Below, piece by piece: positions 8,385-59,858 of a stretch of DNA of 64,000 nucleotides (its first letter is position 1; every line of letters starts with the position of its first letter). The stretch lies in NCBI RefSeq assembly GCF_006345805.1, contig NC_043006.1:73656001-73720000 (forward strand), written 5' to 3'. The notes under the pieces are model-generated. The model saw only the letters and a list, made by a program, of their open reading frames with translations, was not told the DNA's origin and made no database searches. A program made the translations under genes and the position numbers. Source of the DNA: Octopus sinensis. Its lineage: Eukaryota.

Positions 8385-8950
8385 TTATAGGCACAAGGCC
8401 TGAAATTTTGGGAGCGGAAGTTAGTCAATTATATGGACCCCAATGCTCAATTAGTATTTATATTATCGACCACGAAAGGGTTGAAAAGCGAAGTCGACCT
8501 TGTCGGAATTTGAACGCAGATCGTGATAGATGAAATGCCACTAAGCAATTTTCTCAGCGTGCTAACGATTCTGCCAGCAAGTAATCTTTTCCACTCTAGG
8601 CACAAGTCTCGAAATCTTGGGGGAGGGCGCTAGTCGATTTGATAGACCCCAGTACACAACTGGTACTTAATTTATCGACCCCGAAAGGATGAAAGGCAAA
8701 GTCGACCTCGGCGGAATTTGAACTCAGAACGTAACGGCAGTCAAAATACCTATTTCTTTATTACCCACAAGGGGCTAAACATAGAGGGGACAAAGAAGGA
8801 CAGACAAACGGACTAAGTCGATTACATCGACCCCAGTGCGTAACTGGTACTTATTTAATCGACACAAAAAGGATAAAAGGTAAAGTCGACCTCGGTGGAA
8901 TTTGAACTCAGAACGTAATGACAGACGTTTCTGCCATCTCCCTCCTTAAT
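8385..8950 (-). mobile_element. Cluster of SINE family 2 copies, including a tail-B copy joined into a tail-A head at 8750|8751
   Basis: Repeated gtcgacctcggcggaatttgaactcagaacg cores, with the junction ...aaaatacc|tatttctttattacccacaagggg. Confidence 0.85.
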
Positions 8951-9848
8951 CAGTAGAAAATAATGAAAATTATTGAATCAAATTAGACAGATATTTACCA
9001 CTTCGTTTTGTATGGAACAGAATTAAGCAGCAAAGAAACAAAATAACGTCAAAATAAAGACAATGACAATAAAACAAAGAAAGATACAAAACACTTCGTA
9101 TAAGTTGGAAGCTAGAATTTAAAAAAAAAAGCAGCCATACAGAATTTGTGAGAATAGTTTAAAAGATAGTTTTTTTTGCGTGGGCAATTTGATGAAAGCA
9201 GAAAGCGTGATACAGAAATGTATTTATGAGAAACCATTATTAAGAAAAGGACAATTATTTCTAATTATGGAATCAATAGTATCCGTTTCATACGATCAAA
9301 TTTGTGGTTGTGCTATTTGGATGTGGTTGTATTGGAAACATAAAAGAAACAAAAAAAGAAGGAAAATAGCCCGACGACGATACCAAAATATCATAGCAGA
9401 CAAGAAATCATAAAATCACATCCAGAGAGATGTTTAAAAATATCTTCTTTGTTTATATGTCAATGCCTCCGATATATAAAATCGGTGAAATTACAAATAT
9501 ATATATATGAAAATAATCAAAAATGTCTAACAAAAAATATCTTACAAAGCATAAAATTTTCTTACAAATATCGCTAATGTCGCCTTTATTCTGAGTGATC
9601 GCTGACTATTGAAATACTTAAGCATATTTTTTTTCTTCTTTCATTTAGAAAAAAGTTATTATTATTATTATTATTATTATTATTATTATTATTTACAAAT
9701 TTTATTTAACGCTACATTTCTATGGAAAAAATTTTTGAAAGAACGAACGATTTCCATTCCATTTAAATGGGTTGCTGAAAAATTCTGGTGATCGTACCAA
9801 ACAACAAGTGAGAGAAACTAATTTTACATTGCTTGCATCAAGCTAAGT

Positions 9849-10110
9849 GGAGGCGCGTGTCTTAGTGGTTAGGGGTGTTGCACCCATGATCGTAAGATTG
9901 TGGTTTCGAATCCTAATCCTAATCGTGGACTGGGGTATCCGTTGTGTTCTTGAGCAAAACGCTTCATTTCAAGTTGCTCCAGTCTACACAGCTGGCTGAA
10001 ATGAATAATCTTGAGACGGAGCGGCGTCCCATACAGTTGGAAATATACACGCCAGAGAAACATAGAAATTGGCCTTATGAGCATGGCTTCGCAAGGAACT
10101 TGGATGCTAT
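9849..10110 (+). mobile_element. SINE family 3
   Basis: ggaggcgcgtgtcttagtggttaggg...ggtttcgaatcc...gttcttgagcaaaacgcttcatttcaagttgctccag. Confidence 0.8.
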
Positions 10111-10392
10111 TCCGGGGAGCTAATATTACTATGGAGGGTCGGAAGTGCAAGTTTCATCATCAAAGCATAATGATTCATTCTTTTAGGCACATATCCCGTT
10201 GTCAAAGAGTACTAAGGTCATGTGAATAGATAGCAATATATTACTGGTACCTATTTCATCGATACCAGAAACCTATAATGGATTTAGTTCAATTCAGTAC
10301 AGTACAATATCTACACCGTCTTCAAAAATAGAAACGTTGGTCTACTTATTTAGATACATCTCGGATTCCAAAGAGAAAAATATTTCAGATTA

Positions 10393-56443: not shown

Positions 56444-56716
56444 CATTAGTTCCCAAACATTTTATGCTACTGCCCTCTTGGCTTCCAAGCCACATTCTTA
56501 GCGCCCCACCCTCCCCACCTCAGATATAGACCACTTTCCACAGAAAATTCAAAACAGCTATATTTCACAAATAAAACTTATACCTAATTAACCTGTTAAT
56601 ATTTTTTTACATGTATCACCCCATTTTAGCCACCCCATTATCATCCCACTTTTCTTCAACGCCCCCCGGATCTTTTCACCGCCTCCAAGGAGTACTGCCC
56701 GCTTTGGGAACCACTG
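56444..56716. mobile_element. hAT/Charlie-like MITE with an 8-bp TSD
   Basis: Ends cattagttcccaaac and rc cagtggttcccaaag. TSD acctgaac/acctaaac (7/8). Confidence 0.75.
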
Positions 56717-58789
56717 ACCTAAACCCTTCAACTCAGTGCTCTTACATAGCTGGGTCAATGACTGAAACCATTAAATGCATAACAGATTCAAGTGAAGACA
56801 TTAATTCGTCCAGCTTTCTTGGTAATCCCAAACTGCTTTTCAGACACATACGCATACACACTTGCACATAACATTCACACTAACGTATACGAACACACAC
56901 ATATACATGCGTAACACTCTTATACAGACACACACACATATGTAACATACATGCGAGTGCGTGCACTCAGACAAAAATTAATAAGTCTCGAGAGACAAAA
57001 TTTCATGTTGCAGTCTGCTCATATATGTAGTATATCGACTCTTGTATACACAACACAGATCAGCTCCCCACCTCTCTCTCTCTCTGATTCACAGAAACAC
57101 ACACACACACACAGAGGCAGACATATACATATATGCAGGCATATATACATACGCAGACATGTATACACACGTATGTGTGTGTATGTGTGTGTAAATGAAC
57201 GCATATATACACATGAGGAAGAATCGAATGGAGTTTCACAGCCACATGAAACAACATGTCGAGTGTCGAATGCCAAATAAGATATAGAGTAAAATCTGTT
57301 TAATTCTTTCAAACTTCTCAATGATACGCACCCCAGTGACATCTCGCGGGTTTCTAAGTTAATCTTATAAAATGACAAAAGCTGCAGCGGCTTCCATTGC
57401 TAAGAAAGCCTCAACATGCATTCGAAGCCGTATTACGAGCTCAGACTGCTGGGTATCTACATTTTCCTCCATACACGACCTGACCCCTTAGTGTGACATT
57501 GTGTAAAACCATTTTACGTGTGAAATATAATCCAATCGTGAAAAGCAACAATTTCGAAAATTCACATCGTTTATTCCTACTAAATTCAGAATGAGACGAT
57601 CAAGCTCTGCCGTTTTGATATTTACGTTTCGGTGCATCTGATTGGACGTTCAAACTGTTTTGGTGGCACTACGTTTTGGCACTGGAAGATAATACACACA
57701 AACACACAGAAATATACACATACAGATAGAGGGGGTGAGTGAGAAAGAGTGAGAGAGATATATATGTATATACATAACAATTTAATGAATAAACCCAATT
57801 GACATAATCACTTTTCCTCTCATACATACGAATAGAAATATGCACGCAAACATAATCGGAGAGAAAGACCGAAATAGACAGAGATAAAGAGAGTGTGAGA
57901 GCAAGAGGGAGAGAGCGTGAGAAACATTAAAACGACAAATGTCAAATAAGTCAACGTCTAATCATTGACACAGAAACGGCTGTGTCAAAACGGAGGCGTG
58001 TTAACGTCTAGTATCCCATTAATAATATCTTAAGTCATTGAGTATCTTAAAGGCAATGCCACTGAGACCGAGAGGTTGGTTAATGTTAGTTACTGTTCAT
58101 AATATAATGTAATCATATTCCCCTGTTTTATCATTTAAGTGTACTTTCCTTCAACGACGGCTCAAATGCATTGCCTGTGATAGAGACTATTTTCAGTCAT
58201 TTAGTATCTTTCTTTTTATAGAAGCAAAGTTACTCTGCCAACATGTAGAATTTGAACAGTCTATATCAGTTACAAAAAAGTTATGCTCAATTTTGCATTA
58301 CTTTCAGCACAATCCTCGTACCTATATTCATGCAAGTTTATTAAAAAACAAAACAAAATGAAAAGCAACAAAAACATAAAAGTGTCTGCTTCTTAATTTT
58401 GTTATGATATTTCAAAACGTATTAAAACAGCTAATATTTCAATGGATTACAGGATCGGATTACGAGGTGAATGAACAGAAACATAACTCGGTGTACTGAA
58501 ATAATGGAATAATTTCAGATATAAATCTATTAAAGGATACTTTGCATTTACGTATTGAGATCTGTAATTTATCACTTCTTAGTGACTCAACATAGATTAA
58601 AAAAATATATATATAGTACATTATTGTTTCTATTTCGCGGATTTTCACCTATTGCGTGGGGTTTTGGAATGTAACACCTGCGATAGTCGAGGGATCACTG
58701 TATAATGGTTTCAAACAGGTGGGGAAAAAACGAGAAATCAGTAACTATTAATTGTACCCCAGTTAGCTATTTTGCCCCCCACCTCTATA

Positions 58790-59858
58790 TAGTTATTTCA
58801 AACTTTGGGACCGGGCTAGCAATTTTAGGGCGAGGGAGTAAGCTGATTACATCGACCTCATTGGTCATCTGGCAATTACGTATCGACTTCGAAAGAATGA
58901 AAAGCAAAGTCGACCTTGTTGGCATTTGAACTCAGAGCGTAAAGCTGGCAGGAATACAACGAAGCAATTTGGCCGATGTGCTAAGTATAGATTCTGCCAG
59001 CCCACATACGCAATAAGGATTGAAATATTGGTGGTATACGGCTAGACGATTACGTAACTCGTGTACTTAGCTGGTACTTAGTTTATCGATTCGGTGACGT
59101 AAAGTCGATCTCGGTGAAATTTGATCTTATGACGTAATTAATCGGGAGAAATACTGCTAAGCATTCTGTCCGACATTCTAGCGATTCCGCTAGTTCGGCG
59201 CCTTACACAAACACACACATAATGGTTTCTAATTTTGGCATAAGCCCAGCAATTTCGAAGAAGAAAACAAGTCGATTATAGCGACACCAGTACTCAACTC
59301 GTACTTTTTTCATCAACCCCGAAAGGATGAAAGGGAAAGTCAACCTCGGTGTAAGTTGAACTCAGAATGTAAAGATTGACGAAGCGCTACTGAGTATCTT
59401 TCCCGGCGTGCTAACGATTCTTTCAGATCGTCACCTTACACCCACCCATATGTATAATTGTTTCTACCATAGGCACAAGGCCTGAAAATTTGGGATAGTG
59501 GGACAATCGATTATATTGACCCCAGCACTTAACTGGCACGTAATTTGTCGACCCTGAAATGATGAAAAGCAAAGTCGACTTCGGCGGAATTTGAACTCAA
59601 AACGTAAAAACAGACGAATTACCTATTTCTTTACTACGCACAAGAGGCTAAACACAGAGAGGACAAACAAGGACAGACAAACGGATTAAATCGATTATAT
59701 CGACCCTAGTGCGTAACTGGTACTTATTTAATCGACCCCGAAAGAATGAAAGGCAAAGTCGACCTCGCCGGAATTTGAACTCAGAACGTAGCGGCAGACG
59801 AAATACCGCTAAGTATTTCGCCCGACCTGTTAACGTCTCTGCCAGCTCGCCGCCTTAA
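58790..59858 (-). mobile_element. Same-strand chain of SINE family 2 copies (tail-B junction at 59623|59624)
   Basis: Four or five successive cores, with the junction acagacgaattacc|tatttctttactacgcacaag. Confidence 0.85.

Follow-up and report, generated by a model that had tools for sequence, protein, structure and literature searches.

A stretch of 64,000 nucleotides (nt) of the Octopus sinensis genome (contig NC_043006.1, positions 73,656,001–73,720,000, forward strand; hereafter, the window) contains short interspersed nuclear elements (SINEs) of two related types, family 2 and tail-B. Tail-B ends were found joined over and over to one and the same position in the head of older SINEs. Young tail-B elements have probably inserted repeatedly and independently between nt 47 and 48 of these older relatives, with the 5′ junction set by homology. 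The products look like dimeric SINEs and are mosaics in which young sequence is flanked by the two parts of an old host.

The window is repeat-rich animal DNA, and its SINE families are present in loci of O. bimaculoides too. A head and body of ~165 nt are common to both types. Family 2 ends in tail-A, of the kind CCCCAAAATTTCAGGCCTTGTGCCTAGAGTAGAAA(C/A)GATTATT, and the 3′ end of the tail-B type reads TTAATCCGTTTGTCTGTCCTTGTTTGTCCTCTCTGTGTTTAGCCCCTTGTGGGTAGTAAAGAAATA; tail-A copies outnumber tail-B copies in the window. Numbering starts at the first G of GGCGGCGAGC (nt 1). The junction is reported as host nt 47/48, GCTTAGC/GGTATTTCG, a slash marking the junction here and below.

The fixed junction between tail-B ends and host heads

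The tail-B end GTAGTAAAGAAATA, with ≤2 mismatches allowed, gave 11 matches in the window against 1.25 expected, and 0 shuffles reached 11. Read in SINE orientation, this end directly adjoins GGTATTTCGTC, or a decayed form of the host from nt 48, at seven junctions, and at one more it lies close by:

8750/8751, exact junction, reading GGTATTTTGAC
26889/26890, exact junction, reading GGTATTTCGTT
30384/30385, exact junction
46383/46384, exact junction
48439/48440, exact junction, reading TTTATTCGGTC
51310/51311, exact junction, reading GCTATTTTGTT
59623/59624, exact junction, reading GGTAATTCGTC
27120/27121, near junction; the host begins 3 nt later, with ATATCGTC

The host at the near junction belongs to a subfamily like copy 28137–28319, which reads GGTATATCGTC. 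The original prediction had listed seven junctions of a tail-B end with a host head and an eighth about 3 nt off, and all of them held on re-reading. Three further tail-B-like 3′ fragments, 30547–30590 (+), 41920–41965 (+) and 32081–32145 (−), lie beyond that list. The window thus has ~13 tail-B ends, seven exactly and one nearly at the hotspot (~60% hotspot use). With about 24 host sites and 2 × 64,000 positions, the chance of at least 7 of 13 ends falling there is ~1e-23. Upstream of nt 48, only tail-B was found, never tail-A.

The tail-B ends away from the hotspot were the following (the inverted fragment 30547–30590 is given with its composite below):

49031–49297 (−), free tail-B monomer M1; element at 49047–49280 in non-SINE DNA, with 17-nt duplications at 49031–49047 and 49281–49297
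41090–41512 (−), tail-B element M2 at 41304–41512, with an internal 24-nt deletion, and a family-2 SINE from ~head nt 14 at 41090–41303
41920–41965 (+), isolated and diverged tail-B-like 3′ fragment of 46 nt, then a (GTAT)n microsatellite; outside any SINE
32081–32145 (−), tail-B-like 3′ fragment that runs into the head of the other abundant SINE family immediately ahead of CTTGCTTAC

The monomer is the clean tail-B copy in unrelated DNA that had been claimed earlier. Its target-site duplication, ATATATGGTAGAGGGAA, is perfect over 17 nt, the head has one mismatch only, and the other mismatches to the B2 consensus are evenly distributed along the element. A free monomer with its own duplication shows that tail-B is a mobile SINE. 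The second head site of the original prediction was placed at 41303/41304 (~host nt 14); its junction AAAGAAATA/AGAAACGTTAGC is an ordinary AGAAA-type target. The kind of junction seen at 32081–32145 occurs also in O. bimaculoides (locus L007, ~12982 (−)), the first ~28 nt of that head being replaced. Of 24 heads of that SINE family examined, one in the window and one in O. bimaculoides show this fusion before CTTGCTTAC.

Structure of the composite loci

The loci at the hotspot are composed as follows; divergence values are from consensus:

46156–46551 (+), composite D3: old host head nt 4–47 (46156–46199), middle of duplicated host nt 48–58 and young tail-B insert (46200–46383), downstream unit from old host nt 48 to tail-A (46384–46551); divergence 19% (head), 2.7% (insert) and 14.8% (downstream unit)
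48191–48620 (+), composite D4: head 48208–48254, insert 48255–48439, host nt 48 to tail-A 48440–48603; divergence 8.5%, 2.2% and 10.6%, respectively; flanked as a whole by perfect 17/17 repeats AATAGTTTACTAAGGAA (48191–48207 and 48604–48620)
59454–59854 (−), composite D6: head 59808–59854, insert 59624–59807, host nt 48 to tail-A 59454–59623; divergence 10.6%, 3.3% and 13.6%; first unit of a five-unit same-orientation SINE row (58825–59854)
51195–51880 (−), row including composite D5: units F_51a (51665–51880) and F_51b (51484–51665) and host H5 interrupted by tail-B, that is, H5 head nt 20–47 (51453–51483), first copy of duplicated host nt 48–66 (51435–51452), 5′-truncated tail-B insert of about nt 105–231 (51311–51434), second duplication copy with the rest of the host (51195–51310)
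8585–8947 (−), composite D1: host head nt 1–19 (8928–8947), insert from ~nt 55 (8751–8927), host nt 48 to tail-A (8585–8750); host nt 20–47 absent at the 5′ junction; divergence 7.7% (insert) and 9.3% (host)
30213–30590 (−), composite D2: inverted 44-nt tail-B fragment (30547–30590, +), tail-B insert from ~nt 100 with an internal duplication (30385–30545), host from nt 48 onwards with a TTTGAAAC-type tail (30213–30384); divergence 3.1% (insert) vs. 20% (host)
26845–26909 (+), fragment P1: last 45 nt of tail-B (26845–26889) joined to host nt 48–67, GGTATTTCGTTTGTCGTTAC (26890–26909); inverted SINE pieces come next
26984–27349 (−), composite M3: full tail-B of the older B1 type (27121–27349) and host of the head-deletion subfamily (26984–27120), almost identical in structure to the free copy 28137–28319; junction AAAGAAATA/ATATCGTC, 3 nt off the usual site

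A flanking duplication around the whole composite was not detectable at 8.9, 46.2 or 59.8 kb.

Ages of the parts

The age comparisons rest on a small sample, the three complete composites (46156–46551, 48208–48603 and 59454–59854). Their divergence from consensus was 12.8% at nt 1–47, 2.7% at nt 48–231 and 13.0% in the downstream unit. Both the head (p = 8.5e-6; 2e-4 without CpG transitions) and the downstream unit (p = 2e-10) differed from the middle, but not from each other (p = 1.0). Pairwise p-distances, which are independent of any consensus, were 0.197 for the head, 0.044 for the upstream body, 0.061 for tail-B, 0.212 for the downstream body (at positions matching those of the upstream body) and 0.186 for tail-A. 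An unsupervised change-point in mismatch density, blind to the junction, fell after nt 46 (range 31–62; permutation p ~0.01). In the free monomer, unlike the composites, mismatches are evenly spread. Since head and downstream unit are equally diverged and the change-point falls after nt 46, the two make up one old SINE, with a young insert of ~173–184 nt between them; the young DNA comprises nt ~48/59–231 only. The events at 8.9 and 27.1 kb involve an older tail-B variant and show a weaker age contrast; with 7.7% and 9.3% divergence of insert and host, the 8.9-kb event is an older one.

The original prediction had described the tail-B unit as close to consensus and its host as decayed. This stands for the insert (2.7% vs. 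13.0%) and falls for the first ~47–58 nt of the unit (12.8%), which up to the change-point at nt 46 are the host's own head; the unit as a whole is not the inserted SINE, and the GGTATTTCGTC after tail-B is the host's target-site duplication. Equal divergence of both units, named beforehand as the outcome fatal to repeated insertion, is clearly not what was found, pairwise distances being 0.044–0.061 in the young parts vs. 0.19–0.21 in the host parts. Two other sources of the extra divergence were rejected: A-to-I editing, as alignments by eye show changes of all types, and CpG decay, as the contrast remains without CpG transitions.

Duplicated host sequence at the 51-kb locus

The row at 51195–51880 (−) consists of three old units head to tail. 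Its first two junctions are alike, tail-A being joined to head nt 20 (GTAGA(G/A)AAG/AAAC), and the second and third units have private variants in common; the units are therefore tandem duplicates. The third is interrupted: nt 20–47 are followed by GCTATTTTGTCTGTCTAC, by tail-B lacking everything before ~nt 105, and by GCTATTTTGTTTGTCTTTAC with the remainder of the host. The first of these flanks, GCTATTTTGTCTGTCTAC, is host-type nt 48–66, and its second copy, GCTATTTTGTTTGTCTTTAC, lies at 51291–51310; both carry the derived changes G49C and C55T, found in neither consensus. When the H5 head and the downstream part are joined across the insert, they are colinear with the uninterrupted sister F_51b, with F_51b's CCGAGCG and CGTTTG variants and the same junction of tail-A with nt 20. 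This locus is a 5′-truncated insertion with a 16–19-nt target-site duplication, which took its place after the tandem duplication. At 48.2 kb, T54C is present on both sides of the insert. A target duplication on both sides was seen at these two loci; elsewhere, it is indistinguishable from the insert's own sequence.

Independence of the insertions

The hosts come from at least three subfamilies, with the GTAGAAA tail, with the TTTGAAAC tail and of the head-deletion type. Downstream tails are of the GTAGAAA type at 8.6, 46.5, 48.6 and 59.5 kb and of the TTTGAAAC type at 30.2 kb; the unit at 27.0 kb belongs to the head-deletion subfamily. The 5′ ends also vary. They are colinear at 46.2, 48.2 and 59.8 kb and truncated at 51.4 kb (~nt 105) and 26.8 kb (~nt 183); an inverted 44-nt tail fragment and an internal duplication mark the one at 30.5 kb, and a 28-nt host deletion the one at 8.9 kb. 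Constant 3′ and variable 5′ junctions are as left by target-primed reverse transcription, and a precise 3′ junction combined with truncated, deleted and inverted 5′ ends shows that the events were independent. On the grounds of unequal ages, at least three host subfamilies and locus-specific 5′ structures, we retain the earlier claim of repeated site-preferential insertion without a dimeric master.

Inverted ~45-nt tail-B 3′ ends lie beside or face direct copies at two places, 30547–30590 (+) with 30385–30545 (−) and 26845–26889 (+) with 27121–27349 (−). The inverted piece repeats the same 3′ end, and priming on tail-B RNA at both nicks, in two events, therefore seems likelier than classical twin priming.

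The target site

The head is predicted to fold into a 12-bp hairpin, in which nt 32–43 pair with nt 48–59 and nt 44–47 form the loop. The junction falls where the 4-nt loop meets the 3′ arm, and the duplicated segment corresponds roughly to that arm. Nucleotides 50–51 read TA in 8/8 occupied sites vs. 4/15 unoccupied heads in the window (p = 0.0013); most free heads have CG, CA or TG there. At 46383/46384, 30384/30385, 59623/59624 and others, the junction reads GAAATA-GG-TATTTC; the GAAATA with which tail-B ends is exactly the reverse complement of host nt 50–55. No priming scheme giving the observed orientation could be derived from this complementarity.

Tail-B ends outside the hotspot precede AGAAACG, AGAAATG, AGAAATT or ATA-rich sequence (41304, 30590, locus L010 of O. 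bimaculoides and the monomer). An AGAAA(T/C) or ATA-rich target is the ordinary match of a primer strand to the RNA 3′ end. No microhomology of this usual type was found between the tail-B 3′ end and the hotspot; the hotspot lies outside the AGAAA rule, and therefore something else selects it. A second recurrent SINE-to-SINE junction was observed at the A/T-rich body motif GATAAATTAAGTACC (about nt 122–128), after a TTTGAAAC-type tail at 26910–26996 (−) of the window and after tail-B at ~170–190 of a metagenome contig (L005).

Other octopus DNA

Exact-pattern scans of metagenome and prokaryote-genome collections with the tail-B end returned chance bacterial matches only and no octopus sequence. 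Comparison DNA was obtained through protein searches. SINE-derived peptides led to the 543-bp metagenome contig L005 and, with a multi-frame query, to four O. bimaculoides genes (loci L007–L010); the O. sinensis locus L006 was used as well. L006–L010 amount to about 108 kb of non-N sequence with 3 tail-B ends, all in the O. bimaculoides loci, and about 15 family-2 heads; L005 added one further tail-B end. One of these four ends is at ~nt 122 of a family-2 body (L005), one at the head of the other SINE family, and two are in unique DNA. Site occupancy was 8/24 in the window vs. 0/15 elsewhere (p = 0.015), and 8/13 vs. 0/4 tail-B ends were at the hotspot (p = 0.08). The preference may be regional, or confined to the youngest subfamily or to the window's species.

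Proposed mechanism

The strand-level steps that we infer are the following. The site GCTTAGC/GGTATTTCG would be nicked at the boundary of the loop and the 3′ arm of the predicted head hairpin, either by a sequence- or structure-specific endonuclease of a putative partner long interspersed nuclear element (LINE) or by something else that nicks hairpins. The original prediction had named a target-specific LINE endonuclease acting in trans as the probable agent. To judge from the duplication, the top strand would be cut ~10–19 nt further on, and host nt 48 to ~58–66 would therefore be duplicated. At the 5′ junction, the upstream host end would pair in register with the new complementary DNA (cDNA), a pairing that the homology between the two allows. 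The product, host head, young nt ~59–231 and host nt 48 to the end, would mimic a full tail-B SINE fused to a 5′-truncated family-2 SINE. Other resolutions of the 5′ end with the same 3′ junction would have given the truncation at 51 kb, the small target deletion at 8.9 kb and the inverted fragment at 30.5 kb. Homology- or microhomology-guided 5′ joining is established for LINE-mediated integration of L1 and Alu.

Alternative explanations

A separate host nt 1–47 upstream of the tail-B head was never found at any composite. Together with the repeat around the 48.2-kb composite, this fits a dimeric master, a template-switch chimera or in-register insertion. The unequal ages rule out a single dimeric master, as do the variety of hosts and that of 5′ structures.

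Concatenation at the RNA level survives best among the rivals, and we regard it as unlikely. A SINE RNA would be cut in the loop at nt 47/48, the reverse transcriptase would jump from the piece starting at nt 48 to the 3′ end of a tail-B RNA, and the whole would be inserted as a unit. This would suit a break at the 3′ edge of the predicted single-stranded loop, the lack of a separate upstream head (none whatever at 30.5 and 26.8 kb), the perfect duplication around the whole 48.2-kb composite, and TT for GG at 48440 and the 3 nt missing at 27120, which resemble untemplated additions. A further element in the window is in its favor:

574–678 (−), chimera: family-2 head nt 1–47 ending in GCTTAGC (630–678), joined directly to 574–629, the final 56 nt of the tail of a different SINE; at 42537–42600, this tail stands on another head

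The chimera joins head nt 1–47 to a foreign tail, with (AT)n on either side of the whole; position 47/48 is thus a breakpoint also in an element unconnected with tail-B. Concatenation, however, predicts one insertion age, whereas head and downstream unit are 4–5 times more diverged than the middle, with the change-point at nt 46. The 51-kb case, where the insert lies within one of two units already standing in tandem, is beyond its reach. Host-specific variants duplicated at nt 48–66 are not among its predictions, and it leaves the tail-B-only acceptor and the TA at nt 50–51 unexplained.

Still less probable are composite source genes, that is, one or a few dimers formed once and multiplied as dimeric SINEs like Alu. 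The internal junction is identical in seven copies, the composite is without a T4 terminator (consensus by inspection), so RNA polymerase III could read through both units, and the 17-nt duplication around the whole 48.2-kb composite is perfect. Against this, downstream units differ by ~21% pairwise while upstream bodies differ by ~4%, the downstream units are of different subfamilies with different tails, 5′ structures vary by locus, and the 51-kb insert lies within one of two tandem units. At most, single loci such as 48.2 kb could be of this kind, each needing its own source. Spread at the DNA level, in which one ancestral insertion would have been copied to neighboring SINEs by ectopic gene conversion or unequal recombination, is very improbable. 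It would also account for the clustering of the composites in this window, seven lying within 51 kb vs. none in about 108 kb elsewhere, and replacement of an older by a younger Alu is documented in primates (PMC554112). Such spread would, however, leave young flanks of variable length, whereas the downstream units are diverged from their first nucleotides (e.g., nt 49, 52 and 59), the 5′ boundary clusters at nt 47–60, and truncation, deletion and inversion at the 5′ junction are marks of reverse transcription rather than conversion.

Several points weigh against repeated insertion with homology-guided 5′ joining as well. Hotspot composites were absent from the ~108 kb and L005, where 0/4 tail-B ends are at 47/48 and at least 2–3 perfect GCTTAGCGGTATTTCGTC sites are unoccupied. 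The window has no LINE reverse-transcriptase open reading frame (ORF), and a partner LINE was not found in it. The hotspot is without the primer/RNA microhomology of the AGAAA type seen at other tail-B ends, so that one machinery would have to choose its sites in two ways. The loci at 30.5 and 26.8 kb are without an upstream host head (comparison of the upstream DNA with the SINE head, p = 0.37 and 0.73, respectively). The perfect 17-nt repeat that flanks composite D4 has a chance of ~0.03–0.13 for a host 7–10% diverged, and the 48.2-kb composite may have been copied as a unit. The chimera 574–678 breaks at 47/48, yet an event at the RNA level is the easier reading of it. Three complete composites and a single locus with an explicit duplication make up a small sample, and these same few copies supplied the consensus of the young part, a consensus that does not enter the pairwise distances.

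Other features of the window

Same-orientation head-to-tail SINE rows of 2–5 units with short spacers occur at 51203–51880 (−), 58825–59854 (−), 48208–48920 (+), 8371–8947 (−) and 13333–13767 (+); the spacers of the 59-kb row are similar GT-rich stretches. In O. bimaculoides L007, 1127–1510 (+), a 5′-truncated family-2 SINE (from nt 69) stands directly behind a full copy; ATTATTATAATATGTAAT comes after both copies, so the A/T-rich 3′ flank of the first insertion served again for the second.

A gag-like ORF at 16342–17253 (+) has a CCHC zinc knuckle and one stop codon inside and, across 99% of its length, shares 52% identity with the uncharacterized O. sinensis protein LOC115225585; no reverse-transcriptase ORF comes after it. 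Remnants of mariner-like and Tc1-like transposases lie at 12276–12572 (−) and 22419–22697 (−), e.g., …PYSPDITPSDFHLFRSLQNSLNGKNF…, with no Pfam match at E ≤ 0.01. Matches to Rfam microRNA families at 50094–50803 were far below gathering scores on a TG/TA-rich microsatellite and were rejected as simple-sequence artefacts.

The stretch GGGGTCGATAAATTAAGTACC may resemble the MIR core. A tRNA origin of the head was not confirmed: ARAGORN found no tRNA anywhere in the window, an Rfam search of 46000–52000 gave no tRNA match even at E ≤ 1, and A-box- and B-box-like motifs were spotted by eye only. Octopus OR1 and OR2 are cited as members of the CORE-SINE superfamily, which has a common central CORE domain of ~60 nt (PMC4824008, PMC4758252).

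The window has one assembly gap:

42168–42267, 100 N; outside every element discussed

The 500 nt on each side of it are without mutual overlap, and the sequence right next to it occurs nowhere else in the window. SINEs of these families stay clear of the gap, the nearest being the fragment 41920–41965 (202 bp off) and the element ending at 41512. Continuity over the gap cannot be demonstrated, and no part of the finding depends on it.

Comparison with known systems and significance

Tx1 and Dong-R4 are LINE clades known for target specificity. Both are among the LINEs with recent activity in O. vulgaris (PMC13282606). Of the crocodilian SINEU-3 copies, about 90% lie in one Mariner family, Mariner-N4_AMi, as do their presumed Tx1-Mar partners (Kojima, 2015, PMC4494074). 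The tail-B case is alike in that, within the window, most tail-B ends sit at one site of another repeat family and truncated copies point to independent insertions. The specificity of SINEU-3 is ascribed to a target-specific LINE acting in trans, whereas the partner LINE of tail-B is putative, none having been found in the window, and hotspot use by tail-B is about 60% in the window and 0/4 elsewhere, compared with 90% genome-wide for SINEU-3. Unlike the SINEU-3 target, that of tail-B is the head of the inserting SINE's own older relative, so that homology can resolve the 5′ end and the product mimics a dimer.

Dimeric SINEs such as Alu and the shrew mole dimeric SINE (PMC13023118) likewise have two related units head to tail with a constant internal junction, but in the octopus composites, the ages of the units differ greatly, the first 47 nt group with the second unit, the downstream units come from different subfamilies and the 5′ structures are variable. 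In primates, the replacement or partial conversion of a resident Alu by a younger one shows that incoming SINE cDNA may be joined with a homologous copy already in place (PMC554112), and here, too, homology would set the 5′ junction. In the Alu case, the old copy is replaced; this concerns about 2% of young Alu loci, and no internal site is fixed. In the octopus composites, the old copy is kept on both sides and partly duplicated, and one nucleotide position is reused. Template-switch chimeras such as passerine TguSINE1 (PMC5729268; bioRxiv 10.1101/081950) also combine pieces of different retroposons with sharp internal junctions. They are one unit of one age, a property for which the main composites were tested and which they lack; the chimera 574–678 may be of the template-switch kind. 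Finally, RTE-related SINEs have insertion sites with a recognizable sequence pattern set by their partner LINE, with target duplications that begin with a T, some 10 nt downstream of a T-stretch (PMC6007223). The hotspot is likewise a recognizable pattern but lacks this signature, as its duplication starts with GG and the 10 nt upstream (GAAATGCTTAGC) have no T-stretch.

In the searchable literature, which does not cover repeat-library entries, no description of octopus SINE dimers, of their nesting or of these sequences was found. The novelty is the combination: the head of the element's own older relatives as target, one position used repeatedly, and in-register joining that leads to look-alike dimers of old and young parts.

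A further idea, speculative and unlikely, is that tail-B or its putative LINE partner homes to the hairpin loop edge of its own older relatives, and that truncated copies thereby regain heads and seed dimeric families. In-register joining would then give even 5′-truncated copies a complete head with the A-box region, so that a SINE would "repair" its 5′ truncation by parasitizing resident promoters, and the 48.2-kb composite could be the first copy of a genuine dimeric SINE family. If a site-specific LINE endonuclease is responsible, this would be a new target-specific retroelement in cephalopods.

The composites are an example of one route to dimer-like SINEs, distinct from a dimeric master and from template switching. 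For O. vulgaris, 893 unclassified SINE families have been reported (PMC13282606). Mosaics that join a ~3%-diverged segment to ~13%-diverged flanks will inflate the counts of SINE "families" in automatic libraries and will blur age landscapes based on divergence.

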